From contig NC_068983.1 of the NCBI RefSeq assembly GCF_001194135.2, forward strand, positions 157,515,007 to 157,579,006: a stretch of 64,000 nucleotides of DNA, given 5' to 3'. The notes under the pieces are model-generated. The model was given only the letters and a program-made list of their open reading frames with translations, ran no database searches and was not told the DNA's origin. The position numbers and the translations under genes are program-made. Every line of letters starts with the position of its first letter. Position 1 is the stretch's first letter. This document shows positions 7,721-58,278 of this stretch, piece after piece. This DNA is from Octopus bimaculoides. Its lineage: Eukaryota.

Positions 7721-7726
7721 TTTATT
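7721..7726 (-). terminator. Candidate AK2 polyadenylation signal AATAAA
   Basis: Plus-strand tttatt, about 270 nt downstream of the stop; judged by position only. Confidence 0.35.
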
Positions 7727-9655: not shown

Positions 9656-9823
9656 ATCATCAATATTATCCACTTTAGGAGGATTAAATTTTACATGATA
9701 TGACCGCCCACTTGCAGGATGGATCCTTCTTCCTGTGATACGTTCGATCAATAAGGAGTCATCTATAGAAAACTCAATCACAGAATCTAATGCAGTTTTC
9801 CGCTTTGTCAGTAAATTATCAAG
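9656..9823 (-). CDS. AK2: Adenylate kinase 2, exon 4 (start of LID domain)
   Basis: ttttcAG|[56 protein letters not shown]|GTAAGT; 168 nt. Confidence 0.95.
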
Positions 9824-12392: not shown

Positions 12393-12567
12393 TACACTCT
12401 CTGAGTGGTTGGCGTTAGGAAGGGCATCCAGCTGTAGAAACTCTGCCAAATTTAGATTAGAGCCTGGTGTTGCCATCCGGTTTCACCAGTCCTCAGTCAA
12501 ATCGTCCAACCCATGCTAGCATGGAAAGCAGACGTTAAACGACGATGATGATGATGATGATGATGAT
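12393..12567 (+). mobile_element. RTE-tail SINE/LINE 3' end with (GAT)n tail
   Basis: gagtggttggcgttaggaagggcatccagctgtagaaac...ccatgctagcatggaaagc.gacgttaaacgacgat(gat)n. Confidence 0.8.
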
Positions 12568-25987: not shown

Positions 25988-28900
25988 TTTTCTCTACTTA
26001 CTGTACCTTTATTACTATTCAGCCACTCTTCCTACCTTACCCCGAACTCATACGTATCACTGGCTATCCCCACTCTTAATCCACCATAAACTACATCCAT
26101 CTCTCAACCCCACTCAATTTCTACAGGTGTCATCTACTCTCCCCTACTTATTATCCCTCAACACCTGTTCTTCATTATATTCATCCCTTAACCCATTCCC
26201 TATCTCTAACTCCCCTACATACTCTTACAATCTCAACTCACAAACACTTCCTATTCTCCTGTTCCCACTCACATCTACTCCCTTCCAACTTTGAGGATCC
26301 ACCATGACAGCTCATCACCACTATTTTACCTCTTTCTAGTTCCACTCTGGTTATTCCCACCCTTTCTTCCACAAGTTGAGTAGCCATATAGTTCCTCTAC
26401 AGCAAGAAACCTCTGTTTTGAACATTTCTCTCATACATTATTCCACATCTCCCAGCCTTAATGCCACCTCTATCTCTACTGTCACCTCACTCAGTCGAAG
26501 ATCTTAATCTTGCAAGATGTGTGGCAATCTCACAACTGCTGGTGCACTGAAAAAAAAAAAGCACCCAATACACACTGTAAAGTGGTTGGTGTTAGAAAGG
26601 GCATCCAGCAATAGAAATCATACCAATGCAGACATTGGAGCATTATGTAGATCTCAGATGCATTGGATCCTGTCAAACTATTCTACTATTTGAAATGTTT
26701 AAGATTTATCATGTAAATGTAATTTGAAGCTGTATTAAATTTCTACTTCAGTTTTAAATGGATAAAGTGTACAGATTAATTTTCAGTTACCATATTTATA
26801 ATTTACATTTTAATATTTATAACTTTAAACAGGATTGCTTTTCTAATTAGAAGTAAAAATTCAGTACTGCAATACACAGTATATTTGTTAAGAGTATCAC
26901 TGACATAGGTATAAATCTTTGAAAGATGCTATTAAAACAAGTCTAAATATTTATAGCAGCTATGGGACCATATATACTTGGATGTTTTCATGCATATACT
27001 AGGTAATCATTAGTATCACTGCTGTAATCCTTGTTTTTTTTTTACTTTTCTTTTCTTTCCTTCATTCACCGAACACATCATTTGGGGTTCTGCTACTGAT
27101 ACAGCATTTAGGATTGTATTTTGAATTTCGGTTCCTCAAAAATAGTATCTGGTTGAAAATATTCGACATAAATATATATGGCATCTATGCAGTGCAGTTG
27201 CTACACACAGCTCATTTAAACAGCATCCAAAAGGCCATTTTGACAAAGATTCACTCACTGACATGCTATACTCGCTGGCTCACACGCAATATTTCTTTTC
27301 TATGCCTTTCCTACCACTACAACTACAGCTTCTGCACTGGACTAGTAAACTGCATACATTCACCCGAACTGGTTTCTCTTCTTTTCATTCAAAATTTCTC
27401 TCTCACCACCGGATGTCGTACACAACACATTTCCTAGTCAATCCTTTTCAAATTCCTCTGGAATCCAACCGACACTCGTGTCACGTTTATTTTATTTGCA
27501 AAGGTTACTGAGAATTTCAAACTAAACATGGACTGCATCGAGTTTACTCGTCCAGAAGGGCCGGCTGAAATCATCGGCGCTGTTTTCTTCTTGTGACTAA
27601 CGATAAAAATAATTGTTTGCTATCTGTATATTGTATGCCGATTAGAATAATCTGTGTAGGTACTTGGTAGGGTGTTAAAAGATTAAGCTATATAAGTTAC
27701 GAGGAAAGCATATCACCGGTGTCTATCTAGATTTCTTGATGTAGACGTGTAACCAAAGTAGAGGCTCCAAATAGCATCATTCAATATCACAGACAGAAAA
27801 CTAAGTGACGACAGTCGTTTACATTAGCCCTGATTGAGCAGAACTATGAACAAAGGCGCTCCAAACACGACCATCACATCGTTTTAGGAACTACATTATT
27901 CGAGATGTTTTTTTCTTTTGCTAAGACAGGAGGGTGTAGATTAAGAGATTTGGCTGTTATTTCTAGCAAGTCGAGCAATCCAGTTAGTTCACAGCGAGTG
28001 TTCCAGCGTGGCGATAGTTTGCAAATACATCTGTATATTCTCAATTATTTTAATTTTATTTGTAGTTTTGAAATGAAAAGAAAAAAAATCGAGTTCATTT
28101 TTTTTCCTTGCCTTCCCAAAACAGTTTACTCAGAACAACTAGTAACTTAATATGTTCTAAAATATATAAAGTTTAACGATCCTATATTTTTAGAGAAGGA
28201 GACATGCATGCCCTTCTCAAGGACACTAGCGGCACAAATCATGTGAAATAAAATGGCTTAAAGTGATAATCAAGTCGCGAGGTTGTTTGCCGTAGAATTT
28301 TACTTTGGAGCCAACGAAGAAATCTCTAGATGATCAATCAACGGCTAAAAAATAGCAGTCAAATCTCCCTCGTATCAGAACTAACTGTCTTTCCATAAGG
28401 AAGTGACACATTATACAATTCAGTTTACATACTCCTAAAAAGATGATGTAGCCATGACTGGAATGTCTTTGATAACAGGTCTGCTCAATCAAGGTTAATC
28501 TAGGACTAAACAACCTTGAAAGTGATAAAAAAAACAACAAAACCTGTTCAAAAGATAGGTTTTAAAAAGGTAGCTTGTCGACCTACATACTTTTAATTCA
28601 TGTCATAAAATAAGCATTGATAATATACACGAGACCTACTAAATAGATTAGATATTAAATTGGTCGTGTCATAAAAACATTAATCTGATATTAAGTAAAA
28701 TGAAAAAAAATGTTGTAAATAATATGTTTAAAAAAAACATTTGAATGTCGTGCATAAATTACTTTCTAAGTAGTAGTATCTAGTAGAATATGTATTTCAT
28801 TAATAAATAATGATAATTTCTATTTAAAAATTAATGTTAAAGGTTAAAAGGTTAATAAATTGAAATATATTACCAAAACTATAAATATCTCTTTTGAAAT

Positions 28901-29412
28901 TATGTTGCTTCATCTATATCTACTAATATAGTTAATAATTATCGATTTAACTTTTCAATAAGAAAAGGACAAACAGGTTATAAAGGTTGTGCTATTTTTG
29001 AACAGAAAAACAGTATTCTTCGATTTTAGGCTTTTAGAGAGATAATTGCTAAGATTGGAGAGAACATGACACGTCCANNNNNNNNNNAACAATGTTGGCG
29101 TGCTTATTGAGACGATATTGTTTGAAGCATAAGAATGTATTATTTTAAATATATTCAGATAGAAAACGCCCTTCACAGTAAGTGTATTCTCACTAAACTT
29201 CAAAAACAAATCACGCACGTAGGTCAACAGTCATTTATACTAAATCGATTTTTCCAATAAACATGTTTCACAAAGATTGTGGCGGCAATATCAAAAAATT
29301 CAAATATGATAATTAATTCTTCAAAACAATTTACTTTTATAGGATAATATATTTTTATTAAACCATAAGTAAAAAGGAAAACATTGGAAATTAAAAAAAA
29401 AAAAAAACTCAC

Positions 29413-29517
29413 TTGAGTTCCTTTGCCAGAACCTGGTGGCCCAAGTAATACAGCCTTTACTCCTGGCGTCTGCTCATCTGGTTTTTCAGCAGTCTGTACA
29501 TTTTGTAATGGGGCCAT
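29413..29517 (-). CDS. AK2: Adenylate kinase 2, coding exon 1 (35 aa, contains P-loop GPPGSGKGTQ)
   Basis: ATG at 29517; MAPLQNVQTAEKPDEQTPGVKAVLLGPPGSGKGTQ; donor GTGAGT at 29412; phase 0. Confidence 0.95.
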
Positions 29518-29661
29518 TATTTAACTTCTCCGCCAAATCTTTTAAACTCGAAGGAAGGGAAGGAAATGATTTTAAACGATAAAGCAGTCAGAGATGTAAT
29601 TTTTAACTTTTGCAGTTGGACCCTGCCGTCAATAAAAAGATACGGAGAGTGCTTGAAATTA

Positions 29662-29671
29662 ACGCATGCGT
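29662..29671. promoter_or_regulatory. NRF1-like palindrome ACGCATGCGT in the AK2 proximal promoter
   Basis: Palindrome 145 bp upstream of the AK2 ATG; shares the GCATGCG core of the NRF1 consensus but is not a full match. Confidence 0.35.
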
Positions 29672-30479
29672 GATTGTTATGAAAGGGACATAATTTACTT
29701 CATGTAAATTTATTTAGGTCGCTTAATTTTTCTTGTTCAACGCAAAACTGGTTTTTGAGACTAATTATTCAATGGACTTTGACAATATAAAATAAATATT
29801 TTCCAATAAGTACAGTCTTCTCTTATCAAAAGTAAATATTAAGATATTTGTTCTGTAGGCAATTTTATAGTTATATGGTTATATTTGTTAACGATCACAA
29901 ATATTGATTTTTCATATAACCATAATGTCTGAGATGCGCTATTATAAGAAAAAAAAACAGGTTGTAATTTTCTACTGCATTAGTAATTGAAATAAACTGT
30001 AATAGTAGTTGTTGTTTAGTCCTAGGTCAACTCTGATCAAACAGAACTATGACCAAAAAGCTTCTAGCCGTGACCATCCTGCCTTTTTCTTAGATGAAGG
30101 GAACCAAAAACCGTACCATCCAACGTTTCCTTTTCTGTTCTGTTAACTAATTTGTATTACCAGAATTGCAGGTTATTGGCGGATTAGACTGTATATTAGT
30201 TATACTAATTCTCATTCTCATCAATTTGTAGTTGCTAAAGGTTTCTGTAACTTTGGATTGATTGGCAATGATCTAGTTGATGTGTGTCTTCATTTAGTTT
30301 TAATTTGTATGAAGGTCTAAGACCAATTGATAATTTCAGGACATCTATTGCTTAAATTCCTTCAACTGAAGATAAAATTTGTCCTACTAGACCAGTGGTT
30401 ATTCAGTTCAAAAACGAGATTTATAAGGAATTAATAAGATTATAGAATTAGGATTACATTAATGATAATAATGTCCAGG

Positions 30480-31029: not shown

Positions 31030-31620
31030 TAGAGGCTTCTTAGGTGCGCAGATTATAAAGTACTCTTAATCATATACAGACATTTAAATTTCCATCTCTG
31101 AATATAAAAACCATCTGCATGGAAATGAAAGGTGCCAAGTTTTTCTCCATGGTTGAACTATTATCCCTGTACTGGCAAATCGACCCTGATGAACAGATCA
31201 AAGATGTATGTACAACATCACTCATGGTCTTCCAGGGTTGACAGATTGCAAATATAAGTTTTATCTCCATATATAATATATAAACATGTACTACATCTTT
31301 TAGAACATTGAGGAATTTTATAAGATTTTGCTGGCAGATTTTTTAGATTAACGTAAACATTAATTTACATGAAAGAAAATTACCAGAGAACTTTCATCTA
31401 GTACTTTCCAAATCTTTCTGTTAAAACTGGATTGAAAGCATTTGGGGAAACAATTCTAGTGTAATTTTTCGCATAACATTGAAACAATTTTAAAAGGAAT
31501 CATTAGCGTTGGTTTTTCAAGGTGATGTATATGTTGCAACATTGTCAAAGCTTCAGAGGAGAGAAAATACAGTTGTTGAACGTCTAAGGCAGCGATATGT
31601 AGCGTACACTCAAGTGAAAT
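31030..31620 (+). mobile_element. Gypsy/Ty3 reverse transcriptase relic (frameshifted)
   Basis: Manual translation: LRCADYKVL; FKFPSLNIKTICMEMKGAKFFSMVELLSLYWQI; FG.TNSSVIFR; VFQGDVYV (decayed xxDD); VVERLRQ. The motif order matches Gypsy RT. Confidence 0.7.
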
Positions 31621-32453
31621 TCCTCTCTCCCTTATTGTATGTACGTACATACGAACGTAGTAGATAACAGCTAGCCTTTGGCTGCTATTTGGACCCCGTT
31701 GTGTCCACTACTTGATTGGTTGGTATTGGCACAATTTTTCTCTTACTCTATCGCGCCAATATGCAGCGTATAACCAGCCGAAGCCCCTAAATAAGATCAC
31801 GTGAGACAACCTGTTCACAATCCAATTTGAGCCTACTGTTACTTATAACAAACCCAGCTACTCCTCGTCTCGAGGTCTTTGGTTCCAGACCTTTTAAGGT
31901 CCAGCCACTGACCACACAAAACACAGCCAGTTCCAGCAACAACACTCGTCCAACAGCAAAACGACCGAGTTTCAACACAACACTGTTCGTGAATTACTTC
32001 ACCAGGGATCAACTGCAAATATACAACCTGCGAGCCAGACGACAACACCCGTCCAACAGCATTACGGCAATCTCTTTCTTTGTCGCTACCATCATCTTAA
32101 CGACATCAACATCTCTACGTACACAGCTCAACCAGCAACACTGCACATGTTCTAACACAGCACTGTTCGTGAATTACTTCACCATGGTTAACAGCAAATA
32201 CTACCTGCAAGAACTCCTGTACAAGTAACTCAGGCAGCAGCATTACAGCTACAACTTCGTACGACACGTACCGCAACCAGCTCTGTATCATCGCCACAAC
32301 TTCTTGATACAGTATTTCTATTACCGCGTACAATTGACTACGAACTGGTATTTCTCATTCTTGTGTCTATGAACATTCGTCTAACTTCTCATTATCGACT
32401 CTTTCACTTTCTCCATTATTCTTATATGTACTTAACGCATCCATCCATGCCTA

Positions 32454-33155
32454 TAGGGCTTTCCTATAAGGTGTTATNNNNNNNNNNNNNNNNNNNNNNN
32501 NNNNNNNNNNNNNNNNNNNNNNNNNNNNNNNNNNNNNNNNNNNNNNNNNNNNNNNNNNNNNNNNNNNNNNNNNNNNNNNNNNNNNNNNNNNNNNNNNNNN
32601 NNNNNNNNNNNNNNNNNNNNNNNNNNNNNNNNNNNNNNNNNNNNNNNNNNNNNNNNNNNNNNNNNNNNNNNNNNNNNNNNNNNNNNNNNNNNNNNNNNNN
32701 NNNNNNNNNNNNNNNNNNNNNNNNNNNNNNNNNNNNNNNNNNNNNNNNNNNNNNNNNNNNNNNNNNNNNNNNNNNNNNNNNNNNNNNNNNNNNNNNNNNN
32801 NNNNNNNNNNNNNNNNNNNNNNNNNNNNNTATTCCTGTCTGAAGTATCGTCCGATACTTCAGACTTATCGTCCGATGAATTTACTTTGTTGACATTCTTC
32901 ATCGACAGAATTTTTATTCCTTTCAACCTTTCAGTCAAGTCCGCCTTTCTTCCAGTAACATACTGTCCATATAATCTTAAATATTTCTTTAACTCAGGCA
33001 CAGTAAATACTTCGATAGCTGAATCATCAAGCTGCTTTATATCCATGATAAGACGTAAAACAATAACAATGGCGTGGGTTAGCCTCCGGAAGTTTAATTA
33101 TCTACATGGAGCGCCGCCTAGCCAAGGGAGATAACCTACTTATAGGAAAGCCCTA
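32454..33155 (-). mobile_element. Small TIR DNA element carrying a SAP-domain ORF (interior partly in gap 32478-32829)
   Basis: TIR tagggctttcctataag (32454-32470) and cttataggaaagcccta (33139-33155), flanked by TA on both sides. Confidence 0.65.
32830..33046 (-). CDS. SAP-domain N-terminal ORF of the TIR element, running into the assembly gap
   Basis: FTVPELKKYLRLYGQYVTGRKADLTERLK fits the SAP pattern xVxELKxxLxxxGLxxxGxKxxLxxRL. Confidence 0.6.
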
Positions 33156-33596
33156 TACACGCATACACTTTGTTCTCATAACGGCCTGTCTATTATTCTG
33201 TATACATGACGCACACAGACACACACATGCTAACCTATCGATAAAACTTCCCTCTCAAATATCCTACTCGGTTGTATAGTGATGTCAGGGTTACCATTTT
33301 ATAGTGGTAATGTCGATTAAATGACACACTATAATTTAATGAGTATGAGAGAAAGAAGGGTCACCATCTTGTACATAACAAGAAAATAGAAATTCGCGAG
33401 ACATTTGTAATAAGTCATAGCATATTTATTACTGGAGGGAATGCATTAACATATAAGGTTAATTGAAGGAAACCTTGTAACATTACATGAATATATTCTG
33501 TTTGCAATCCCATGTCTCCAAGTGAGGCGAAAGTGCGCACGAGCTAGTGTGCATGTGGTAGCTTGGCCTAATGCACGTCGAAGAATCAACAAGCAC

Positions 33597-33705
33597 TGAA
33601 TGGCGCGAATTTAGAAATTCCTTCCTTTATATAAAGGATGCACCGGAAGTCCCCGACTTCCACGTAAACTGGAAGCTTCCAGAATGTTCGAGAACTTTCT
33701 AGAAG
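33597..33705 (-). promoter_or_regulatory. Heat-shock-type core promoter: 7-unit HSE (33671-33705), ETS site CCGGAAGT (33643-33650), TATA (33626-33633), Inr-like TCAGT (33598-33594)
   Basis: gGAAgcTTCcaGAAtgTTCgaGAActTTCtaGAAg = seven perfect alternating nGAAn units; TATATAAAGG on minus strand 30-34 nt upstream of a CA/TCAGT initiator. Confidence 0.75.
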
Positions 33706-33879
33706 CTCGAGGGAGATTACTCTCGTTAAATCCCTTTTTTGTTTTGCTTTCTAACGTGACCGCCAGGGTTCACTACAGTTGTGTCTCTTCTCCTTTTCCT
33801 CACTGGCACCTTACATGTATTATTATAGCCTTCTGAACAGAGTCATTATTAGATGGTTTCACCATGCTTCACCTCGACC

Positions 33880-34797
33880 ATGTATAGATGCACAACCTGC
33901 TGGCTGCATGTGGTGCGTGAAACCATTTTCAAAGATTCTTATTTCAATTTTAGCACCAAATACTCAGGTGACTGGGTTGATGCCATTTCTGTGTCTAACG
34001 TTGGTGGCCTACTCAGCTTGGACGAATTTCACGTCTCCATTGCCCTCAGAGTGGGAGCTGACATCTGCATGGGTTTGAGCTGTTGTTGTGGCAAGCTCTT
34101 CGACTCCACAGGCCTCTATAGCCTTTCTTGCTGCCTGAATGCTGGTCACTTCGCGTGTCACACGGAGTTAAACCTTGTACTCAGGAGGAGCTTGGCCTGT
34201 GCAAACGTCCCCTCCATCTTGGAACCATCTGGGTTGTCCAGATGTGATGAGAAAAGACCTGACGGCTTCACTCTGTGTCCCTGGTTGAGAGGCTGATGCC
34301 TTGTCTGGGATGTTACAGTTAGTGACTCCTTTGCTTCTCATATCTTGGATGCTGCGGCCAGGGCGAGATCTACAGCTTCTGTAGCTGAACAGAACAAAAT
34401 CCTGAAGTACTGCGATCTGTTGGCCAACTACATTTTCCATCCTGTGGCATTCGAGATGTTTGGTAGGGGTTGGACAACTGACTGTGATATTCCTGTCTTC
34501 ACTGGCAGCTCGTCAAGCAGAGGAAACTTGTGAAGCTTGTGAGGGCACTTCGTTGTTCCAGTGCATCAGCCTTGCCATCACCCGCGGCAACCCAGGTTCG
34601 AAATTTCCCCAAGACACCTGAAGAAGGCTAGAGGGTATATCAGCTGAAACGTTGTTAACAACAAACAAGATGAGGACAAATATCTGTCGAATGTAAATAA
34701 TGTACATAATTCCTCATCTCTTAAATATAGAACAGTCATTATAAAGGTTTCCCAACGCCCCAAAATTTTCAACCTAAGGGGGTGAATTGCTTTTTTT
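33880..34797 (+). mobile_element. CRE-like (RLE endonuclease) non-LTR retrotransposon 3' fragment, interrupted at about 34591-34736
   Basis: SGDWVDA..F.VSIALRVG..CCCG..D..G..L.C..H.ELN..EPSGL.R.D.KRPDG.TL.PW..G..LVWD.TV..KY..L..Y.FHPVAFE.FG. Confidence 0.8.
34614..34657 (+). ncRNA. Minimal hammerhead motif in a Penelope-type end inserted into the CRE copy
   Basis: acac-CUGAAGA-a-ggcu(12 nt)agcu-GAAAC-GUU-guua; core present, stem I only partly paired. Confidence 0.5.
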
Positions 34798-35171
34798 TGN
34801 NNNNNNNNNNNNNNNNNNNNNNNNNNNNNNNNNNNNNNNNNNNNNNNNNNNNNNNNNNNNNNNNNNNNNNNNNNNNNNNNNNNNNNNNNNNNNNNNNNNN
34901 NNNNNNNNNNNNNNNNNNNNNNNNNNNNNNNNNNNNNNNNNNNNNNNNNNNNNNNNNNNNNNNNNNNNNNNNNNNNNNNNNNNNNNNNNNNNNNNNNNNN
35001 NNNNNNNNNNNNNNNNNNNNNNNNNNNNNNNNNNNNNNNNNNNNNNNNNNNNNNNNNNNNNNNNNNNNNNNNNNNNNNNNNNNNNNNNNNNNNNNNNNNN
35101 NNNNNNNNNNNNNNNNNNNNNNNNNNNNNNNNNNNNNNNNNNNNNNNNNNNNNNNNNNNNNNNNNNNNNNN

Positions 35172-35202
<31 letters not shown>

Positions 35203-35430
35203 GTATGTGTGTGTATATGTTTGTGTGTCTGTGTTTGTCCCCCCAACATCGCTTGACAACTGATGCTGGTGTGTTTATGTCCCCGTAACTTAGCGGTTCG
35301 GCAAAAGAGACCGATAGAATAAGTACTAGGCTTACAAGGAATAAGTCCTGGGGTCCATTTGCTCGACCAAAGGCGGTGCTCCAGCATGGCCACAGTCAAA
35401 TGACTGAAACAAGTAAAAGAGTAAGAGAGT
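35172..35430 (+). mobile_element. Young linker-type SINE, 3' half (head lost in gap)
   Basis: Motifs shared with 17950..18183 and 2676..3034. Confidence 0.8.
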
Positions 35431-35879
35431 ATATATTAGTTTCCTTCATGTCTTTATTGAGTCAAGTGCCATATCTATCAAAATACACTCCTTTTTTTTG
35501 TGGAATACAAGATATGAACTTGTACGTGTTTTAAACAATTTTAAGATACTTGTTTCCTATAATTTAGTTTCCAGTAGCTCACTGCCTGGCATACAAGAAG
35601 TTGTGATTACGTTGCCTCACCGTGTCTCTTCATTTGCAAGGTATGCTATTATATTTTAGTTATATTCAGAAGCGATGTATGTATAAATTTATTATTCCTT
35701 ATGTAACACTGATTTTCTACTTGCATATTTTGGTACACGATTATGAATATATCAAAACTGAAACATTTTACTATTTTCTACAGCACTGTTTGACCCCTTC
35801 TAATGACGGGAACTTGCTAACATGCAAACTAAAAGAAAGCTTTGGAATGAAAACAAGCAGTTTCAAGAAGCATAGACTG

Positions 35880-36030
35880 ACAAGTACTTCATCACTGAAA
35901 ATACTTCAAAGAAGATCATATGCTTAATTTGTCAAATACGCTTTGGGGTTCCTAAAGAATATAATTTACAAAGACACTATTCGACGAAGCACAAAGACTA
36001 TGAAGCTTTAACGGGAAAGCTAAAAATGAA
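35880..36030 (+). mobile_element. hAT (Buster/SPIN, GTF2IRD2-like) transposase BED-finger relic
   Basis: YFITENTSKKIICLICQIRFGVPKEYNLQRHYSTKHKDYEALTGK. Confidence 0.75.
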
Positions 36031-36258
36031 AATCTGCAGCCCGCCTTGTGTGATTGAATTCACGATATGGTCCTTTGGACAAAAAAGGTTGTGCATCCTT
36101 GGTCTAAGGCATGCAAATATCTCTATAAATGTAAAAAAAAATTGTATATCATGTCTCAGAAATGGAGCTTCTAGAAATGCTGTCTTAGTGTCGATGGAAT
36201 TAAACCTTCACAATGATTAGTGGCTTAAACATGATACAATCTGTCAGTAAATTACATC

Positions 36259-36427
36259 GTTCAACCTATAGCTTTTGAGAGACACTGTTGGTGCTGGACT
36301 GCTGACAAGGAAGTTTATGACTTACTACAGTCTCACCTGACTGAAGTAACAGATTATGCTCAGTCAGAAGTGTACTTAGCTGTTCCAGCGCTCCAACCCC
36401 GCAATCATGCTTTAATATTTTGGAGTG
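36259..36427 (+). repeat. 169-bp unclassified dispersed repeat, copy B
   Basis: See 30723..30891. Confidence 0.85.
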
Positions 36428-37396
36428 TCTCAGCACTTTTTAGAGGGGAACAGTAGTTTCCCTTGGCGCCATGTATCATTTAGGGAGAGGCCCCCTCCAT
36501 TTTCTTACTGGTTCACTTTTGTGAATTATGTTTGTTTTTATTGAATTATTGCAAATAAATTATACACTTAGATATATCCTTTAGGAAAACAATAAAAAAG
36601 GAAATCGAACAGTTTGTAGCAGTACTCAGAACTAAAAACCCTGTCAGTTCTGTAAGGAGAAAATGTCCACAGCATTTCAATTTCCATCCTTTTCAGATGA
36701 TCTTAGCCTATATTTCAGACAAACGTTGTACTGCAACATTTGTGTAGGTATTAAGAGAAATGGAAAATTCTATGCAGTTTCTCGTCAAACCATTGTTATA
36801 AACTGAAATGTGCGGGAAATATGAAACAAAGGAGAGAGAGAACACTCGCAGAGGATTGAAGAGGATCACAGAAGATGGCAGAGCATCACAGCGGTTCAGA
36901 GAGGACGGTAGAGGTTTACTTGGTTAACCGGTACTCATGCCACTCTAAACTTGTGTTAAAAGAACATCTCTTGCCAAGCATACCTTCTCACATCTTGCCG
37001 AGCATAACATTTCCTTCTCTTGCTATATAAAAAGGCGTACTTTTTTTTCTATCCCATGTACACTATCTTTCATAATTTATTGATATTGATAATTTTTTCG
37101 ACCTGCAATTTCATTTCCAATTATGGTGGAATGTTTTAAAACCTATGAGCATTGTTCACTTTTCTGCAGATACCTTTTTGCATGACGCCTCATTCTAGCC
37201 TTGCGTTTCATTTCTGTGCATACTTTCCATGACGTCATTTCTTTGTCAGTTTTTATCCACTATTATGCATACATCATACATTGTTCTTTTGCATTTTAGT
37301 GGTTTTTGCTACCCATTTTTTGACATGAATATTACCATTTAAAGGCATTCAGCTTTTCTGCATCGTTGGCTTCAAACATGTATGCACTCTTCATAT

Positions 37397-37485
<89 letters not shown>

Positions 37486-37656
37486 CATACACATACACAC
37501 ACACATATATAGATATAATATTAGGAATAAAAATCCAAGTTTACAGGTAAAAACTCAATTAAATTCAATTTATCAAAANNNNNNNNNNTTATAAGGATTT
37601 CGTAATGAGATAAAAAACCAAGGCTGTGTATAATATAGAACATTTATAAATAGAAG

Positions 37657-37704
37657 GTCTTACAGCTGTTTCCAGGATATTTATTATATTCCTTCATCGG
37701 AGAC
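37657..37704 (-). ncRNA. Minimal hammerhead motif in a Penelope-like remnant (about 37560-37960)
   Basis: gucu-CCGAUGA-agg..ccug-GAAACAGCUGUA-agac; perfect 4-bp stem I, palindromic stem III, GUA triplet, but U4-to-C in the core. Confidence 0.55.
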
Positions 37705-38094
37705 AGTGTGAGAGGATGGTGAAGCAATAGTTAGTTTACATAAGATAGGAAATAGAGAGTGAATGTAGGGATATTGTATTTGTAAATCCATTGTTTAGGC
37801 AAAATGGTGTACATATAAGATTCCAATACCTTGTGAGTAAAATCCAATAGTCTTTAAGATTGGTCATTGCGTTTGTAAATCCATTATTAAGATTACAATT
37901 TCCTATGAGTAAAATCCAACAGTCTTTGAAATTGGTCATTCCAAATACAGAGTCTATACACAGTGTTATTGAATCAAGAGTTCTGTTTATTTAAACAGAA
38001 CCCTCGGAAAGATGAAGTTTAGTGGTTGAAGTCTGGTTTTGGAAAACTAACATTATTTTTTTAAAACAGAAAAGGCAAAAATGTGGTAAATACA

Positions 38095-38345
38095 ATTGCC
38101 AGCTATGAAGTCTCACAACGCATCGCTGAAAAGATGAAACCTTTTTACAGATGGTGATTTATTTTAAAGACTGCTTATTAGCGGTGTTGGATATTTTTTG
38201 TGCAGAAGAAAAGGTTTTATTTGAAATTAACAGCCTCTTTTTAAAGACGGTCACTCGGCGGATTGAAGAAATATCAGCAGATGTTAAAAATCAATTAATC
38301 AACACCTGCAGTGAATTACAACATTTTCCAATTGCAGTCGATGAG
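38095..38345 (+). mobile_element. Downstream piece of the same hAT transposase relic
   Basis: KPFTDG..F.DCLL..L..FC.E....F....L..KTVTRRIEEIS..VKNQL.....FPIAVDEST. Confidence 0.75.
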
Positions 38346-39707
38346 AGTACACGCATATCATGCTCAAGTCACATGACCAGTCGTGATTATCAACCAATCA
38401 GTTTGCAGCAATATATCATGAACACCATGCAAACTCACCAAGCAAACTCACGCCAAAAGCAACCACGGAGGTTGAGAATCATCAGAGAACACACATCCTT
38501 ACCTCTCGCCACAAACAAGCCAGAGTGCAGCCTAGTGTAGCAGAAACAACAAGTTTTCCATTGCTGAATCCTGCGAGAAATCAAAGGAATTCCTCATAAA
38601 CTTGGACCAACTCCTTTTGACTTCTCAAGCCTTAATCATTACTATGTATATTTATTACACTAGCTCGATTCAGATCTCTTATATTCTCTACCAGCAGTCA
38701 TTAGAACTTTATTTTCACTTGTTCTCCATTTCAATAAAGCTTACAGTAATAATATGTTATACTAGCAGAGATACCCAGCATTGCCCGTGTCACATGGAAT
38801 TGAAGAATTAGACTTTTCTTTTATATTTTCTCTAATGAACTGGAATACCTATGATTCGATTTCATCTAAATTGGAGATTAAAAATTTTAATGAGGGTTCT
38901 TTCCTCTTTACACACCCAAACAAAAATTCTAATCATGACATATTTATCCCATACTACTCATCTTTATGCCCAGATTCCAAAACCCAAATCTTATAAAACT
39001 TATTCAAAGGCTTTTGCTGTAACCTTTTCGAGGCTTTTATCTGTAACCTTTTCGAGTCAGATTTGGGTCAGGGCTGATTACAGAGGAAAATCCTTTGTTC
39101 AGCCCGACCTTATTTAGTTAGTAAAGATATAAATACACAACCACAAATTGGTACGCCCCTCTTTGGTCTCTCAGCCTCAGGTCAAAGAGCATCTCTGTTT
39201 CTCATTTCAAGTATGGCCCGTCATCGCGTGACAATGCAGCTCTTGCACTTTCTACATGTCTGGACTCTCTTATTCTTTCTGTTGTGGTGAAATCCTGACA
39301 CCCCTGTGGGATAGCAAGTGAACTTTCCTAAACCTTATAAAGGCGCATGCGTACTGATAGTGTGAGGTACAATGTGGTGTGTGCAGTCGCATTTGTGAAG
39401 GCAGATGTAGAGGTCGTTGAGAAGAGATATAAGTTTGTCACGTGTTTGTTACTGATTTAGTTTTTGTAGTGTTATAACACTTTTACAGAGTAGTCTATAT
39501 CCAAACTCAAGGATATAATATTTTCTCTCTCCATCAGACCTCCTAGCAGTCAACAGAAGATGAACTTCATTACCTGCAGACTGGACAGCAGAACAACAAA
39601 TAACCTGTATACAATTACAATAAGTTGTTTCTACTTGTAACAATGATAATAACGCTATAATAAAGGCCATTTCAACCAACTAACAATTAATAGTTTCTTC
39701 TCTTTAT

Positions 39708-39922
39708 GGCTGCGAGCTGGCAGAACTGTTAGCACGCCGGGTAAAAATGCTTAGTGGCAGTTCGTCTGTCTTTATGTTCTGAGTTCAAATTTCCCCGAGG
39801 TCGACTTTGCCTTTCATCTCTTTGGTTTCAATAAAATATGTACCAGTTGAACACTGGTGTCGATGTAATCAACTTAGCCCCTACTCCAAACCTGTTGACC
39901 TTGTGCCAAAATTTGAAACCAA
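39708..39922 (+). mobile_element. tRNA-derived SINE (gcgagctggcagaac..gttagcacgccggg head)
   Basis: A/B-box-like head plus the shared body. Confidence 0.8.
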
Positions 39923-40814
39923 TATTTTTCTTCCTTTATACATACACACACAATGTATATTTGTGTACATTGAAAAACATTTCTACGAGGATATATGTGA
40001 TACTTAAAGATTTGCAACATGTAAGATAAAGAAATGTTCTAGTTAAATCTGTTATGTGACATGTATCCATTATCGTTATAAACATAATGAAAAATAAAGC
40101 AGATAATTATATAAAAATGATGCATGTGTGTATGTATGTATGTATGTATGTAGGTAGGTAGGTAGGATTTAAACACAAGGACGATGTACCTTTGCTGAAC
40201 ATGTATACAGTGTATATATTATGTAATGGAGCCTGGTGTTGCCATCCGGTTTCACCAGTCCTCAGTCAAATCGTCCAACCCATGCTAGCATGGAAAGCGG
40301 ACGTTAAACGATGATGATGATGATGAGTAGAAGGAAATCAGAGCATACCTTGCGGAACAAAGTGACAAGGTTCCATCTGGAATTTGAGTTGGCCCTGCTT
40401 GGGCATTCAAACTGTCAACTTTTTATAATCCCAGGCAAAACTTTCTAGAACCATCGAAATACATTTTGGTGGGAAGCCTACATAACTTTTCTTTAATGTT
40501 TGCCACCGTTAACCGATAAATGTCAATTGCTACTGATAGACCAGTTAACATTTACATGTGCATTCTGTCCTCTCAAATCTGATCCTACCTTGTGGATTAC
40601 AACATTGTCAATTTAAATAGTTTTTTTTTACTAGATACTGAGGCAGAATATGGTGACCTTGCTTATTTCTGCGATGTACGCTGGCTTAGCTGAGGATCAG
40701 TGCTAAAAAGAGTACTTGCCTTACACAAAGAAGTGGCGATATTTCTCGAAAGCAAACCTTGGATAGTTCACATTTTCGAGATCCTGATTGGCTTGCAACT
40801 TTGGCATTTATTGT

Positions 40815-42579: not shown

Positions 42580-43051
42580 CATATTTCTGATGAGTTAAAG
42601 ACCAACTTTGATTTTTGATATCTTTTTCATCCATGAATTTCAGTTTTTGCTTTTTAATTTGCTCTACGTCTGAAACAACAATAATAATGGCAACAGCAGC
42701 AGCTGGAATTCTGGAGTACCAGGCGTGGGAAATGACGGTCTGTATGTGTTATTATTTTAGCCAGAAATCTGCACTCATCCAACAGATTTGTGATTAAAAA
42801 CCGTGACTGTACCGTCTATTTGGAGGAGAGAATACAGAGAAACTTGTACCGAAGGATCGCCGAGAATACATACTAGACAATATTATCCAACACATCCCTC
42901 TCCACTTTTAAAGGAAAATTTGAATGCTAATTCTAGCTTTCTCTCAGCTGGTAGATTTCTGTTTGCGAAAGTAGCAAAGAGTTACCTACCTTCGTTTTAT
43001 CAATTTGCATTTTAATTTTGATGTGAATGAACTTCGATTCATTAAAGAGAA

Positions 43052-43178
43052 ATGACCAAATATTTAAATATTCACCCGAACCTAATTAAGGAAAGGAAAG
43101 GTGCCACTTTCGATCCATATACATTAACTTGTTTACTGTGGGATGGCGACGAGGTCGTAAAGCATAAAAGAAATCTAG
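43052..43178 (+). CDS. ACOX1: Peroxisomal acyl-CoA oxidase, coding exon 1
   Basis: MTKYLNIHPNLIKERKGATFDPYTLTCLLWDGDEVVKHKRNL resembles the ACOX1 N-terminus (NPDLxxERxxAxF); donor G|GTAATT, phase 1, fits next exon. Confidence 0.8.
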
Positions 43179-43705
43179 GTAATTTTCGTTTTCATTTTTT
43201 AAAATATTGTCAATGTTATTCTTTCATTCCAGTCAGCTCTAATGGAGCAGATCCATAATAAATAGCCGTGATTAACACATTTTGTATAACTCGGACTACG
43301 TTCTCCAATGCGTCCTTTGGTGTAATTTGTGAGAGCTTGATTTGTATGTCTACCGTTTATATTTTACTGTATTTGATTACGAAATCTTGAATTATTTTAT
43401 AACTTGTATGTCATCGTTGGTAGTTCACCTTACCGAGGTGTCAGATCACCTTTTAGATATTGCTCTACTCGTTAAGGGTGCTTGGCTTTTCCATCTCGTG
43501 TTGGCTCACTTCAATATATTCTGTTGAATCATGTGGTGTGCGACCAATTGATGCACTTGATGCTGCATTGATGTATTTTTTTTTGGGGGGGGGTGTTTCC
43601 TCTTGTAAAATATATTCCTTTCTACGTAATTGTTTTGACCTCCCGACACTGTAGTAAGCATGTCAGATATTGCAGACAGAAAAAACAGTAGAGTATTATT
43701 TATTA

Positions 43706-43917
43706 GGGGGAGATGGAGTATATGTAATCTGGGTATACCCCCCCCCCCATTTTGTTTTTTTTTTACGGAATCCTATGTTTCAGACCATGGAGAATCCGAT
43801 TCTGGAAAAAATTTTTTACATGATCGGAATCTCCATAGCCTAAAACGTGGGATTCCGTAAAAAAAAATTAATAAATAAGGGGGGAAAGGTTCAGATTACA
43901 TATAGTCCATCTCTACC
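43706..43917. mobile_element. 212-bp foldback MITE, Merlin-like, in ACOX1 intron 1
   Basis: GG...CC ends; perfect 8-bp TSD atttatta (43698-43705 and 43918-43925); outer and inner inverted repeats. Confidence 0.8.
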
Positions 43918-44387
43918 ATTTATTAATTGTGTGTTACTTTAATTAGTGCTGTTTGATTTTTTTTTAATATTTTGAGAATGATTAGTAATTATGATAAAAA
44001 CAATAACTTAGTAATAAAAAACGCCCACTTGAATGACACCGTAAAGATGTTCATTAATTTATTGAGGTAATGAAAAGTTGTAAACAATCCGATAAAATCA
44101 TTTAAAAAGTAATCACAACATAAATAAATAAACACTAATTAACTATAGTTGAGATTAGTGGGCATGGTTGATGAGCTTAAATAAATAAACACTATTTAAC
44201 TATTGTTGAGATCAGTGGGCATTGTTGATTTACTTGTTCAAAGCAAAAGAGATCATTGTTGTAGAAACAGAAAAAGAAGCGAAACAAGTTATGAACAGCC
44301 CATTTGTATAATGTCATCTTCAGGCATGGGTGCTTGGGTGCCTCATGGGTCTAGCGCTCTAAAGCTAAACTGTATATAGTGTGGTGG

Positions 44388-45003
44388 TTTGCTTATCAGT
44401 ATTTCGTCTGCCCTTACGTTCTGAGTTCAAATTCCGTCGAGGTCGACTTTGCCTTTCATCCCTTCGGGGTCGATAAATTAAGTACCAGTTACGCACTGGC
44501 GTCGATGCAATCGACTTAATCCCTTTGTCTGTTCTTGTTTATCCCCTCTATGTTTAGCCCCGTGTGGGCAATAAAGAAATAAGAAACGTTAGCACGTCGG
44601 GTGAAATGCTTAGCGGTATTTCGTCTGTCTTTACGTTCTGAGTTCAAATTCCGCCGAGGTCGACTTTGCCTTTCATCCTTTCGGGGTCGATAAATTAAGT
44701 ACCAGTTACGCACTGGCGTCGATGCAATCGACTTAATCCCTTTGTCTGTTCTTGTTTATCCCCTCTATGTTTAGCCCCGTGTGGGCAATAAAGAAATAAG
44801 AAACGTTAGCACGTCGGGTGAAATGCTTAGTGGTATTTCGTCTGTCTTTACGTTCTGAGTTCAAATTCCGCCGAGGTCGACTTTGCCTTTCATCCTTTCG
44901 GGGTCAATAAATTAAGTACCAGTTGGGTACTAGGGTCGATGTAATCGACTGGTCCCTCCATCAAAATTCCGGGCCTTGTACCTAGAGTAGAAAAGAATAA
45001 ATA
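44388..45003 (+). mobile_element. Head-to-tail array of three tRNA-derived SINE units (217-bp period)
   Basis: Junction aagaaataagaaac|gttagcacgtcggg recurs at 44588 and 44805. Confidence 0.88.
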
Positions 45004-45159
45004 CTGTAGGCCTCAGGGTTAATATATAGTTTAACTCCATGTCCCCCCCCCCCGCAAAAAAAAGCCCAGTCTAGTAGGTGTAAAAAAATGTGTAGAAAAT
45101 GAATATGAAAACAAAAATTTGCGCAAACGAACTGGATGTGGAGAGGATCCAATGTGATA

Positions 45160-45760
45160 TCTGTTTTACAGCCTTGTGACCAAAGAATTTTACACTCCGT
45201 GAAGAACGACTATGAAAATGATTTTAGAAGCTGTGCTTGATGCAGTCAACAAAGTAGTAAAACTGCAAGATTACCTGAAAAAGTTCACTGTTAAGGGTAC
45301 CATCTACTCACTTGGGAATGCTTGAAATAATGTTTATAAATCAACAGTAACAAATGCCTGGCACAGAATTTGGCCAATAACGATGTTTGATGAAAATGAC
45401 TCTATAGATAATGAGTTAGGAGGATTTTGTGTCACCTTACACTAAAAGTTTATTTTGCGGAATGGTAAGAAGCTGACACTAAAGAAATGCTAAACGTTGA
45501 CAATGATGCATTTGTTGTGCATACCTTGAGTGATGAGGAAATTGCTGAAATAGTGTTAAATACAGATAGGAATGAAGACAGATAGGTGAAAGAATTCCTA
45601 TGGACAATATGATGAGAATTTGTGGTCAGTTAATAACTGACCTTGAACACTGGGTATTAATCGGTGAGCAGCAGATTAGGAGAGTTTACTCAAAGAGACA
45701 TTGCTTAGACAGAAACATATGCTAATGAGACAGATGACACTTGAAGAAGTCTTTAAAAAT
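45160..45760 (+). mobile_element. pogo/Tigger-type transposase C-terminal relic
   Basis: QPCDQRILHSVKNDY; FTVKGTIYSLGNA*NNV..STVTNAWHRIWP; EMLNVDNDAFVVHTLSDEEIAEIVLN. Confidence 0.7.
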
Positions 45761-50134: not shown

Positions 50135-50530
50135 TCATCATCATCATCATCATCGTCGTTTAACGTCCGCTTTCCATGCTAGCATGGGTTGGACGATTTG
50201 ACTGAGGACTGGTGAAACCAGATGGCTACACCAGGCTCCAATCTGATTTGGCAGAGTTTCTACAGCTGGATGCCCTTCCTAAGGCCAACCACTCAGAGAG
50301 TGTAGTGGGTGCTTTTACATGCCACCGGCATGAAGGCCAGTCAGGCGGTACTGGCAATGGCCATGCTCAAAATGGTGTATTTTATGTGCCACCCGCACAA
50401 GAGCCAGTCCAGGGGCACTGGCAACGATCTCGCTCAAAAGTCCTTACATATGCCGCGGGCCCAAGTGCCAGAAAGGCGTCGCTGGGCACAGGGGTCATCA
50501 CGATTTCGCTTTCGCTTGCCCCAATAAGTC
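50135..50530 (-). mobile_element. RTE-tail SINE copy with (GAT)n tail
   Basis: (atc)n-gtcgtttaacgtccgctttccatgctagcatgg... on plus strand. Confidence 0.82.
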
Positions 50531-51403
50531 TTCGCATAAATATATGTATGTACATATATTTATGTGTGTGTGTGGATGTTTGTGTCTCCTTGTTTTGACA
50601 TTGTGTGATTGTTGTAAATGAATGTCATTCATTTCCAGTATCCTGCATAAACATGTCTGACCATGGGGAAATATTGCTTTGCATGGTTTGGTGATAGGAA
50701 GGGCATCCAGCCACAGGAAAAGCTGCCCCAGTAAAATTTTGTTTGACTCTTGCAAATGTGGAAAAGTGGATGTTAAAGTGATGATGATAAGGATGTTATA
50801 TGATTCACTGATATAACTTAACCTGTCCATGAAAAATTTGACGTTCAGTCTCTGGTCAGTGCTCATCAAAGACATTCTAGCTATGACCATTCCATCATAT
50901 TCAAATAATGTATCAGCATTATCCAACATGTCTTTTCACTTCAAAGTGAGTAAAGTGTGGTTAAAGGGATATTTAGCTGCTATTTTTAACAGCTTGAGGT
51001 GCTGAAAAGTTCCTAGCTTTGAGTAAAAGAAAATACAGGAGGATCAGTTAATTAAGATTTTATTAAACATATTCCCCTCTCAAATTCACACACTTATTGC
51101 AGTGATCTTTCAGTTTTTTTAAGCCCTGTAAAAGAACTCAGAATGTTGGGAATCCACCCAAGCCTTTTTGCAATACCCTTAAAGCCAGGAATTTTTCAGT
51201 ACCACCACCACCACCACCACTCCATATATGCCTCTCTTTGATAAGACCAATTTGATTGAAAGTACAGATATTTGAAATTGCAAAGAGAGTCATACCTGTT
51301 TCTTTTTTTGACTGATATAGATTAATTTTTATGCCCAAGTGTTTAATAGCCTCACAATATGAATTTATAAATTTTAATCTTAAAACATTTTATTTTACAT
51401 CAG

Positions 51404-51557
51404 TTGCATTACTGGAAAATGACCCAAATCTTCAAGATGAGAATTTATCAGACTTTTTATCACAAGAGGAGAAAATTGATTTTGCCATAAAGAAAACTAT
51501 ATATCTCTTCAGAAAACTTGGAATGAATGAGAAAGAATATTACATGTTTTTATTTCA
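51404..51557 (+). CDS. ACOX1: Acyl-CoA oxidase exon 2
   Basis: ttttacatcAG|(V)ALLENDPNLQDENLSDFLSQEEKIDFAIKK...YMFLF CA|GTAAGT; NDPxxxxE motif; 154 nt, phases 1 and 2. Confidence 0.85.
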
Positions 51558-51827
51558 GTAAGTTATAACTTTGAAAAGATTCTTAAACCTTTTATTTTTA
51601 ACTTTTTAGCATTCACCTTGTCCTGTCCAAAGTAATGCTTTTTTATTCACATGTTTTGAATTAATCTTGCATTATCTTGTAGCTTTTGAGATTTTGATGA
51701 GGTGTATCAAGCCACCCAGTAACTTAAATGAGCTTTCTATTATTGTGCGAGTAGAATATGCCTGTTCCAGTCAATGGATGTAGGTGTGATAGCTAACTTC
51801 AAACTATATTATCTGAGAAGAATTTTC

Positions 51828-52383
51828 GGATCTATTTTAAAATGGGGGCCACATTTTTCATTAATGTTTTACGTAGTGTTTTTGGTACGGAAAGACTTTC
51901 AAACTTCGTATACTTATCTATTTTGTGTGATAGAACAGAAAAATATTTTTGTATTCGAATTTATTTCATGTAAAAAATTGTCTTATTTCGATAATTTCAA
52001 CCAATCACTGACAAATATTCAGTTGTTTACATTTACTCCTTTGACTGATTAAGCGATGTAAAGCGTATTTAATCTCCATACCTTCGTTTTATTTGCTTTT
52101 TTCATTTTAAATTTGCTTTAACCCTAACCCTAGGGTTAGGGTTAATTGTTTCAGAATCGTTTGTTTATGTAGTCGGCACTTAATGTATATCGGCTGAATG
52201 GACGTCAGTGATTGGTTGAAATTACAGAAATACGACAACTTTAACATGGAATAACTTATGGATTTCTTTTTTTTTTAAGAAGACTAAGAGAAAAAGATGT
52301 TTTATATGACACATTCTACCAGTGTTCCAAGTTTCAAAGTGTTTCGTTAATGAAAAATGTGGCCCCCGTTTTAAAAAAGATCC
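51828..52383. mobile_element. 556-bp Merlin-like MITE with a central telomeric palindrome
   Basis: TIRs ggatctattttaaaatggggcc.. / ..ggcccccgttttaaaaaagatcc; perfect 8-bp TSD gaattttc; central aaccctaaccctagggttagggtt. Confidence 0.85.
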
Positions 52384-53008
52384 GAATTTTCTAATAACTT
52401 ACGCCCAGGGGTTAGTACTTATAGAGAAAAGTCAGCAAGTTTTTTCTTATAACCACCCTAATCATGAACATAACATAATAATTACAAGAGGCGTTTACAA
52501 TGAGCTCTGTATGTTTGTGTCTCCTTGTCCTGACATGATAGTTGTAAAATGGCTGCCACTGTCATACAAGCAGCGTCATTCATTTTCAACATTCTGTAAA
52601 ATATGTCTGGATATTTCATGTATGTGGTGATTGAAGAAGCTATTTCACCCCCAAATCTTTCATATAACAACAATTTATTGTTTATATTCAGTTTTGAGTT
52701 CTTAAATAACAACTTTTGAGAAGTCAGTTGTAAACTGAATCAACTCCAATATAATATCAATACTTGTTTTATTGTGTCAATGAATTAAAGGATTAAACTA
52801 ATCTCTCTAAAATTTTAATTGTGTACTAAAATACAGTAATATTGTAAAAACTCATAGGCATTTTCTCTGTCCTTCTTATAATCAGTTTTATAAAGTAGCT
52901 AATTTAATGTGTTATAATTTTACATTTTTATTTATATAGTTTGTATCTGCTATATAAAATTGAAAGGTTGCGATCAATTTGAATATTTTTCTTGTTTTCT
53001 ACTTCCAG

Positions 53009-54569: not shown

Positions 54570-54764
54570 TCATCATCATCATCATCATCATCATCGTTTA
54601 ACGTCCGCTTTCCATGCTAGCATGGGTTGGACGATTTGACTGAGGACTGGTGAAACCGGATGGCAACACCAGGCTCCAATCTAATTTGGCAGAGTTTCTA
54701 CAGCTGGATGCCCTTCCTAACGCCAACCACTCAGAGAGTGTAGTGGGTGCTTTTACGTGTCACC
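54570..54764 (-). mobile_element. RTE-tail SINE copy (ends at gap)
   Basis: Family match. Confidence 0.8.
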
Positions 54765-57239: not shown

Positions 57240-57645
57240 CCTAGGGCCTGGGCACCTGTACCAGTGTGGCACGTAAATAGCACCAGCGTGATCATTACCA
57301 ACGTCGCCTTCCTGGCACTTGTGCCAGTGGCACATGAAAAGACATTCGAGCAAGATTGTTGCCAGTGCCGATGGACTGGCTCCTGTGCAGGTGGCACATA
57401 AAATACACCATTTCCAGCATGGCCGTCGCCAGTACCGCCTGACTGGCCCTCGTGCCGGTGGCAAGTAAAACACCCACTACACTCTCGGAGTGGTTGGTGT
57501 TAGGAAGGGCATCCGGCTGTGAAAACTCTGCCAAATCAGATTGGAGCCTGGTGTCGCCTTCGGGTTCCACCAGTCCTCAGTCAAATCGTTCAACCCATGC
57601 TAGCATGGAAAGCGGATGTTAAACGATGATGATGATGATGATGAT
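57240..57645 (+). mobile_element. RTE-tail SINE copy with (GAT)n tail
   Basis: Family match. Confidence 0.82.
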
Positions 57646-57745
57646 TTATATTTGAATAATATAACAATAAGTTCTATATTTATGTATTGAGCCCTCTTAG
57701 TCCTATATATCAATATATCATTTTTATATACACATATAACCACAC

Positions 57746-57789
<44 letters not shown>

Positions 57790-57852
57790 CTTCTGACTTA
57801 GTAACTGAAGAATAGAAAGAACTGATAAAGTATATTGCAGAACATATTTTTC

Positions 57853-58278
57853 GGATCTATTTTAAAACGGGGGCCACATTTTTCATTAATGTTTTATGAA
57901 GTGTTTTTGGTACCGAAAGACTTTCAAACTTCGTATACTTATCTATTTTGTGTTATAGAACAGAAAAATATTTTTGTATTCGAATTTATTTCATGTAAAA
58001 AATTGTCTTATNNNNNNNNNNACCCTATCACTGATAGAATTGTTTCAGAATCGTTTGTTTATGTTGTCGGCACTTAATGTATATCGGCTGAATGGACGTC
58101 AGTGATTGGTTGAAATTACAGAAATACGACAACTTTAATATGGAATAACTTATGGATTTCTTTTTTTTTTTAAGAAGACTAAGAGAAAAAGATGTTTTAT
58201 ATGACACATTCTACCAGTGTTCCAAGTTTCAAAGTGTTTCGTTAATGAAAAATGTGGCCCCCGTTTTAAAAAAGATCC
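57853..58278. mobile_element. Second copy of the ggatc-ended Merlin-like MITE, abutting the ACOX1 exon 4 acceptor
   Basis: Same TIRs as 51828; perfect 8-bp TSD tatttttc (57845-57852 and 58279-58286). Confidence 0.85.

Follow-up and report, generated by a model that had tools for sequence, protein, structure and literature searches.

The sequence lying between the divergent AK2 and ACOX genes of Octopus bimaculoides supports the presence of a complete heat-shock-type RNA polymerase II promoter, which is directed along the minus strand and has no chaperone gene behind it. We estimate at about 0.5 the probability that the O. bimaculoides lineage recently acquired here, from a mobile element or by copying, an autonomous HSF-responsive promoter, which would produce a short polyadenylated non-coding RNA together with some read-through transcripts. 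The window analyzed in this work, a stretch of 64 kb, is a part of O. bimaculoides chromosome CM046603.1 (assembly GCA_001194135.2); the locus retrieved by way of this species' AK2 protein coincides with it fully, including the gaps, and all coordinates given below without a locus name refer to this window.

Heat-shock element array and core promoter

The heat-shock element (HSE) array GAAgcTTCcaGAAtgTTCgaGAActTTCtaGAA, found at positions 33672-33704, consists of seven perfect alternating nGAAn/nTTCn units, which follow one another without interruption, and all six spacers between them (gc, ca, tg, ga, ct, ta) are distinct. Direct reading of the sequence bore out the description of this array in the first-pass annotation, as well as the order of the ETS, TATA and TCAGT initiator elements that follow it on the minus strand. 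An HSF-regulated promoter is expected to contain at least three contiguous inverted nGAAn units, and the seven units found here would be enough to give room for at least two adjacent HSF trimers. The array is not a random assemblage of motifs: at the base composition of the window a perfect seven-unit array is expected by chance 9e-8 times per window, or about 0.003 times per 2.3 Gb genome. The four-unit HSE pattern occurs in the window only within this array (0.01 expected from shuffled sequences), and five of the six three-unit matches in the 64-kb window (0.66 expected) fall within 33672-33704.

All promoter positions were counted from the predicted start site, the A at 33597 of the minus strand (+1), which was placed by its spacing to the TATA box; on this scale the array occupies positions -107 to -75, i.e., it lies just 5' of the TATA box and the initiator. 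Between the array and the TATA box, two ETS cores are present on the minus strand, namely ACTTCCGG at 33650-33643 (CCGGAAGT when read on the plus strand) and an inverted GGAAGT at 33661-33656 (ACTTCC on the plus strand), and together they form the palindrome GGAAGTC-ggg-GACTTCC with a 7-bp stem (33643-33661, -64 to -46). The TATA box TATATAAAGG (33633-33624, minus strand), in which TATAAA starts at -34, also sits in a palindrome, the 14-bp CCTTTATATAAAGG (33624-33637), and it is followed on the same strand by the initiator CCATTCAGTG (33603-33594), with TCAGT at 33599-33595. The placement of the HSE at -107 to -75 is presumably close to that of the proximal HSE of human HSPA1A, and we take the HSE-to-TATA position to resemble that of characterised hsp70 promoters. 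On paper, the promoter looks fully functional.

Genomic location of the promoter

The promoter is located in the intergenic region between the divergent genes AK2 and ACOX and is directed at the former, which encodes mitochondrial adenylate kinase and is the closest host gene on the path of transcription. The first coding exon of AK2 (29517-29410, minus strand) is separated from the predicted start site by 4,080 bp, plus an N gap whose true length may differ, in agreement with the distance of about 4 kb noted at first pass. Further AK2 exons were found on the minus strand at 18255-18199, ~13354-13166, 9823-9650 and 8227-8000, and an exon of the acyl-CoA oxidase gene (ACOX) lies on the plus strand at 51367-51558. 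AK2 and ACOX are likewise divergent neighbors in Argonauta hians (locus L003), with about 9 kb between them. The proximal region of AK2 (29540-29660, minus strand) carries a CGCATGCG motif, which we assume to be NRF1-like. About 30 nt ahead of the AK2 ATG, a strong 3' splice-site-like tract, ...tttccttcccttccttcgAG, is present, and this acceptor-like sequence suggests that AK2 may possess an upstream non-coding first exon.

The promoter unit resides on a 2-kb contig (32830-34799), which lies between N gaps at 32478-32829 and 34800-35171. The promoter unit is spanned by this contig with no interruption, the only break being located inside the SAP transposon described below, which is multi-copy; such continuity suggests that the copy number of the promoter unit is low. 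The transposon inverted repeats flanking the gap 32478-32829 match one another, and their agreement supports the assembly join across this gap.

Sequences downstream of the predicted start site

A chaperone gene is absent from the window. When five highly conserved human sequences, HSPA1A, HSPB1, DNAJB1, the N-domain of HSP90 and ubiquitin, were used as tblastn queries against the whole 64 kb, nothing was retrieved at E<=0.1, which confirms the first-pass statement that no HSP gene accompanies the promoter. Six-frame analysis against Pfam of the promoter unit with the two sides of the transposon insertion joined (33860-33177 plus 32426-31400) revealed no domain, including any gag/pol remnant; the 64 kb hold no chaperone or ubiquitin coding sequence detected by these searches, and no Pfam domain lies downstream of the promoter. 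When translated in six frames, 33236-33800 also matched none of 5.8 billion proteins, a result that is weak evidence of copy number because the promoter unit has no long open reading frame. The exact products of three small open reading frames overlapping the promoter are not on record, and a sequence pattern matching the window was absent from a metagenome collection, in which octopus DNA is not expected.

The predicted short transcribed region of about 190 nt (193 nt; 33405-33597, minus strand) has little coding capacity, its longest ATG-initiated open reading frame being 32 aa, and a 41-aa frame begins at GTG. The candidate poly(A) site (33374-33430, minus strand) is composed of AATAAA at 33430-33425, with CA and a U/GU-rich tract after it. 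The AATAAA hexamer had been noticed before, with a coordinate one base off (33431-33426); it lies 167 nt downstream of the predicted start, and by itself this hexamer is frequent in DNA so rich in AT. At about +108 there is a possible splice donor, CAT|GTAATG. Of the earlier proposal that the promoter drives a non-coding RNA of about 190 nt, the termination signals are compatible with such a transcript, but the transcript itself displays no unusual folding (the 193-nt putative RNA folds no better than shuffled sequences, z = -1.47) and matched no Rfam family.

The adjacent PIF/Harbinger-type transposon

The SAP-domain element lying downstream of the promoter is a separate entity, a copy of a PIF/Harbinger-type DNA transposon (32452-33176, minus strand), and is not a part of the heat-shock promoter. 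Its terminal inverted repeats were recognized in the window at 33139-33157 and 32452-32470, and the homology to the end of the related element in locus L005 extends to about 33176, which puts the transposon end at ~33157-33176, about 420 bp downstream of the predicted start at 33597. The start site and the HSE accordingly fall 420-530 bp outside the terminal inverted repeats. The transposon possesses an ETS site of its own (33086-33093) in front of the SAP-domain first exon of its gene (33046-32831, minus strand), the only detectable exon, as the interior of the element is hidden by the N gap 32478-32829. At least 18 near-identical annotated paralogue fragments of this exon are present in O. 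bimaculoides.

Longer relatives of the SAP protein, about 550-600 aa in length and found in other molluscs, carry SAP, SWIM and YqaJ-type exonuclease domains. A full-length relative, P0143, is encoded in locus L005 (GCA_046254885.1) within a 4.57-kb unit (5898-10467) whose ends are formed by 41-nt inverted repeats (5898-5938 and 10427-10467), and the same unit holds a convergent gene of a transposase with THAP and DDE_Tnp_4 (PIF/Harbinger-type) domains. The core of the repeat, TATAGGGC(A/T)TTCC(A/T)ATAAG, is common to the window, L005 and Haliotis rubra (locus L006, 4900-7106), and the ACTTCCGG site located 45-60 bp before the ATG is also kept in all three, while the proteins of this transposon family are only about 50% identical across Octopus, the species of GCA_046254885.1 and H. 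rubra. No HSE was found in the 14-kb L005 locus; in the 12-kb L006 locus the sole three-unit match lies 2.2 kb upstream in another gene, and none fronts the SAP gene. On the basis of the inverted-repeat boundaries and the cross-species comparison, the SAP element was rejected as the transcription unit of the heat-shock promoter. Transcription from the promoter could physically run into it, as suggested in the first-pass annotation, but the promoter is no part of the SAP element, which has its own terminal inverted repeats and ETS promoter.

Elements of this family appear across molluscs as PIF/Harbinger-type transposons with a SAP-SWIM-YqaJ exonuclease accessory gene; the accessory gene expected in PIF/Harbinger elements is a Myb-like one. 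Upon translation, 31603-31692 (minus strand) also weakly resembles the exon-2 region of this SAP-SWIM-YqaJ family (E 0.087), and this may reflect a chance similarity or an old decayed copy.

The opposite flank, CpG content and repeats

On the side opposite to the SAP element, the promoter is flanked by a degenerate, CpG-depleted, transposon-like reading frame (33853-34533, plus strand), which has no Pfam match. Its module CxxCG..D..G.H..C ... RPDG ... WDVTV is, as we assume, of a type common in invertebrate retroelement proteins. This broken frame is directed away from the promoter and represents a separate fragment.

The observed-to-expected CpG ratio is 0.73-1.0 across 31251-34000 (500-bp windows) and 0.75-1.24 over 31500-33800 (200-bp windows), the median for the 64 kb being 0.31. 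The AK2 5' domain (27251-30000) is likewise CpG-undepleted and is separated from 31251-34000 by about 1.25 kb of CpG-depleted DNA. The use of CpG content as a marker of age was abandoned as ambiguous, since a young insertion and a germline-unmethylated active promoter fit it equally. Further CpG-undepleted islands (ratio 0.7-1.26) were observed at 42751-45250, 51751-52500, 57500-58250 and 62250-63250; the first of them may mark the ACOX promoter, and it also overlaps tandem repeat units.

The segment 31939-32187 contains two partial direct duplications, one of 39 nt with a spacing of 180 bp and one of 25 nt with a spacing of 103 bp. Each of them occurs in two copies and no tandem array was found there; they lie beyond the transposon insertion as seen from the promoter, where CpG is not depleted. 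Many copies of a short interspersed repeat, some 170-280 bp in length, are present in the window, including three tandem units of about 217 bp at 44422-44962 and copies at 12393-12561, 50137-50420, 54575-54754, 57374-57646, 60377-60662 and 63025-63222, and it is common to the O. sinensis, O. vulgaris and Argonauta loci.

Comparison with other octopods

The promoter has no counterpart at the orthologous position in O. sinensis, O. vulgaris or Argonauta. It belongs, together with both flanking elements, to an 8.5-kb stretch specific to the O. bimaculoides lineage (31727-40227). Collinear anchors to O. sinensis (locus L002) and O. vulgaris (locus L001) were identified on its AK2 side at 31063-30890 (91% identity) and 31727-31684 (82%), and on the other side at 40326-40227 (81%) and 41476-41363 (87%). 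Between the anchors at 31727 and 40227 the two species have 1.8 kb of unrelated sequence versus 8.5 kb in the window. Comparison of 33158-33850 with the three other octopod loci gave no match except for dinucleotide repeats, no HSE array of at least three units occurs upstream of AK2 in O. sinensis, O. vulgaris or Argonauta, and the complete AK2-ACOX intergenic region of Argonauta contains no HSE.

Since nearby non-coding DNA aligns at 91-93%, including the AK2 proximal region (93% with both O. sinensis and O. vulgaris), the absence of the promoter reflects an insertion or deletion and not sequence divergence; taking Argonauta as an outgroup, it is simpler and more parsimonious to assume that the O. 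bimaculoides lineage gained the promoter. As far as can be judged from these alignments, the evidence speaks against the promoter having a conserved regulatory role in the host. The earlier suggestion of a distal promoter or enhancer of AK2 is consequently disfavored as a conserved function, as the 8.5-kb stretch is missing in O. sinensis and O. vulgaris, and it is weakened further by the conserved proximal region that AK2 has of its own and by the lack of HSE in Argonauta. A separate block at 43051-43146 (minus strand) shows 75% translated identity to the AK2-ACOX intergenic region of Argonauta (L003, ~5346-5477); either a conserved non-coding element or an old repeat could account for it.

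Search for features of mobile elements

The idea, put forward in the first-pass annotation, that the unit represents the U3 region of a decayed LTR agrees with its layout, but a target-site duplication, a second LTR and a gag/pol remnant were not found. The TATA box and initiator, the AATAAA at +167 and the U/GU-rich tract would correspond to a U3-R-U5 order, an indication that is weak since AATAAA is frequent here. Possible ends of the TGTA...TACA type are 408 bp apart (33777 and 33370, the latter within ..GTACA at 33374-33370), with no target-site duplication around them. A broader search for TG..CA ends with target-site duplications returned one 5-bp candidate that has no inverted repeat beyond TG/CA and is at chance level. 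Neither was a second copy of 33050-33900 present in the window. Three nucleotides past ..GTACA, a primer-binding-site-like sequence, TGGTGACCC (33358-33366, minus strand), presumably agrees over 9 nt with the complement of the 3' end of tRNA-Trp, which is a weak signal; tRNA scans for an octopus tRNA-Trp found none. A purine run at 33784-33801 is located 6 nt before TGTAG, and the two features, the run and TGGTGACCC, would imply differing LTR roles. Light inspection for Helitron termini revealed no CTRR end after the sole hairpin, and a single array was seen instead of dense HSEs.

Probable origin and possible mode of action of the promoter

Considering these data, the promoter most likely evolved outside this locus and did not arise in place as a regulator of AK2. 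Its most likely source is either the promoter end of a mobile element, of the LTR-like U3-R-U5 type, or a copied heat-shock-type promoter. At the chance expectation of 0.003 per genome, the emergence of a seven-unit array de novo since the split between O. bimaculoides and the O. vulgaris group is very unlikely, which points to the array having been copied from another place. A mobile origin is consistent with the lineage-specific setting rich in transposons, in which both flanks of the promoter are transposon-like, and with the LTR-compatible order of promoter, poly(A) signal, ..GTACA and TGGTGACCC; against it stand the lack of a convincing target-site duplication, of a second copy in the window, of gag/pol and of a protein match, as well as the continuity of the contig through the promoter unit, which would be expected of a low-copy sequence.

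According to the mechanism that we propose, under heat or proteotoxic stress HSF trimers would bind cooperatively to the seven-unit array (-107 to -75), basal accessibility would be provided by factors of the ETS family bound to the palindromic pair (-64 to -46), and TBP/TFIID would use the TATA box (-34) together with the TCAGT initiator. Minus-strand transcription would then start near 33597. Most transcripts would be expected to terminate some 170-195 nt farther on, at the signal formed by AATAAA and the U/GU-rich tract, yielding the short polyadenylated non-coding RNA, and a fraction of them would read into the Harbinger-type transposon about 420 bp downstream.

Several other explanations were weighed against this one. 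The unit could be a unique heat-inducible non-coding RNA gene owned by the host, similar to hsr-omega and kept by selection in O. bimaculoides, with the Harbinger element having landed later in its open chromatin; we consider this unlikely, and hold the same opinion of its version in which the short RNA would be accompanied by longer read-through forms over the partly repeated 31900-32200. A host gene of this kind would agree with the completeness of the promoter, with the lack of CpG depletion along some 2.5 kb, a property shared by the AK2 promoter, with the partial direct repeats spaced by 103-180 bp downstream, and with the single copy in the window, the empty protein search and the low copy number suggested by the contig, but it is missing at the syntenic position in O. 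sinensis, O. vulgaris and Argonauta, its RNA shows no structure signal and belongs to no Rfam family, and the downstream repeats, present in two copies only, do not make up a tandem array. Rather doubtful is the assumption that we are dealing with a relic or displaced promoter of a heat-shock gene with its 5' leader, brought by segmental duplication, by transduction or through misplacement of the contig 32830-34799, the coding part being elsewhere or lost. The presumably hsp70-like position of the HSE relative to the TATA box, the location on a 2-kb contig between N gaps and the possible splice donor at about +108 would fit such an origin; however, the inverted repeats matching across the gap 32478-32829 support the join, no HSP coding remnant was found in the 64 kb, and the leader of the promoter unit is not A-rich, unlike hsp70 leaders, which usually are.

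That the sequence serves as a distal alternative promoter or a heat-responsive enhancer putting AK2, and perhaps ACOX, under HSF control appears improbable. The promoter is directed at AK2, 4.1 kb away, the acceptor-like tttccttcccttccttcgAG lies just before the AK2 ATG, and the HSE is situated in the CpG-undepleted region 31251-34000, some 1.25 kb from the AK2 5' domain; these points are countered by the lack of conservation in three other octopods, by the 93% conservation of the proximal region of AK2 itself and by the transposon, poly(A) signal and assembly gap that intervene. Finally, an inert sequence, i.e., a fortuitous or decayed cluster of motifs neither bound nor transcribed, would not be surprising in transposon-rich surroundings, but the chance expectation of the array, about 0.003 per genome, and its correct spacing from the ETS, TATA and initiator elements make this explanation highly improbable.

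Relation to known heat-shock promoters and significance

With the hsp70-class promoters (Drosophila hsp70/hsp83 and human HSPA1A), the octopus unit shares a contiguous inverted nGAAn array within about 110 bp of the start and a strong TATA box near -30 combined with an initiator; it differs from them in having no chaperone gene, in the composition of its leader, which is not A-rich, and in having no counterpart at the syntenic site of related octopods. Mobile elements that carry heat-shock promoters are already known. Helitrons of Caenorhabditis carry HSEs able to recruit HSF-1 and Pol II (PMC6927752). The octopus array resembles them in being located outside chaperone genes, at a species-varying position and in transposon-derived DNA, but it stands alone, has a TATA box and an initiator of its own and does not form dense clusters, and no Helitron termini accompany it by inspection. 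DIRS-1 gives rise to a heat-induced non-coding antisense RNA of 900 nt (PMC3950715), and ONSEN (PMC8376061) is a further documented mobile element with a heat-responsive LTR promoter. Common to these elements and the octopus unit is the combination of a stress-responsive promoter with a poly(A) signal within a few hundred bp, whereas in the octopus neither a second repeat nor a target-site duplication nor any remnant of gag, pol or recombinase was found. As in hsr-omega of Drosophila and satellite III of human, the promoter appears to be of the HSF type with no protein product, and a tiny 5' open reading frame and some downstream repeats are present; unlike those loci, the octopus one has no long tandem array and is unconserved.

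At present, the unit is a well-formed but unconserved candidate promoter element, as judged from its motif content and the interspecies comparison. There is a slim chance that it is a single-copy gain specific to O. bimaculoides and used by the host, which would be either a counterpart of hsr-omega and satellite III or a transposon-delivered HSF switch for AK2 (possibly ACOX). If active, this compact and very strong-looking cephalopod heat-shock promoter could serve as an inducible promoter in octopus transgenesis, and it could show how stress-responsive promoters originate or spread beyond chaperone genes when a genome is rich in transposons. If the unit proves to be one copy of a mobile-element promoter, it would mark a heat-activated transposon family in the octopus. 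If, on the other hand, it is single-copy and feeds AK2, energy metabolism would have been recently rewired to the heat-shock response, and such a switch of AK2, if true, would be a mollusc example of the heat-shock rewiring described for nematode Helitrons.
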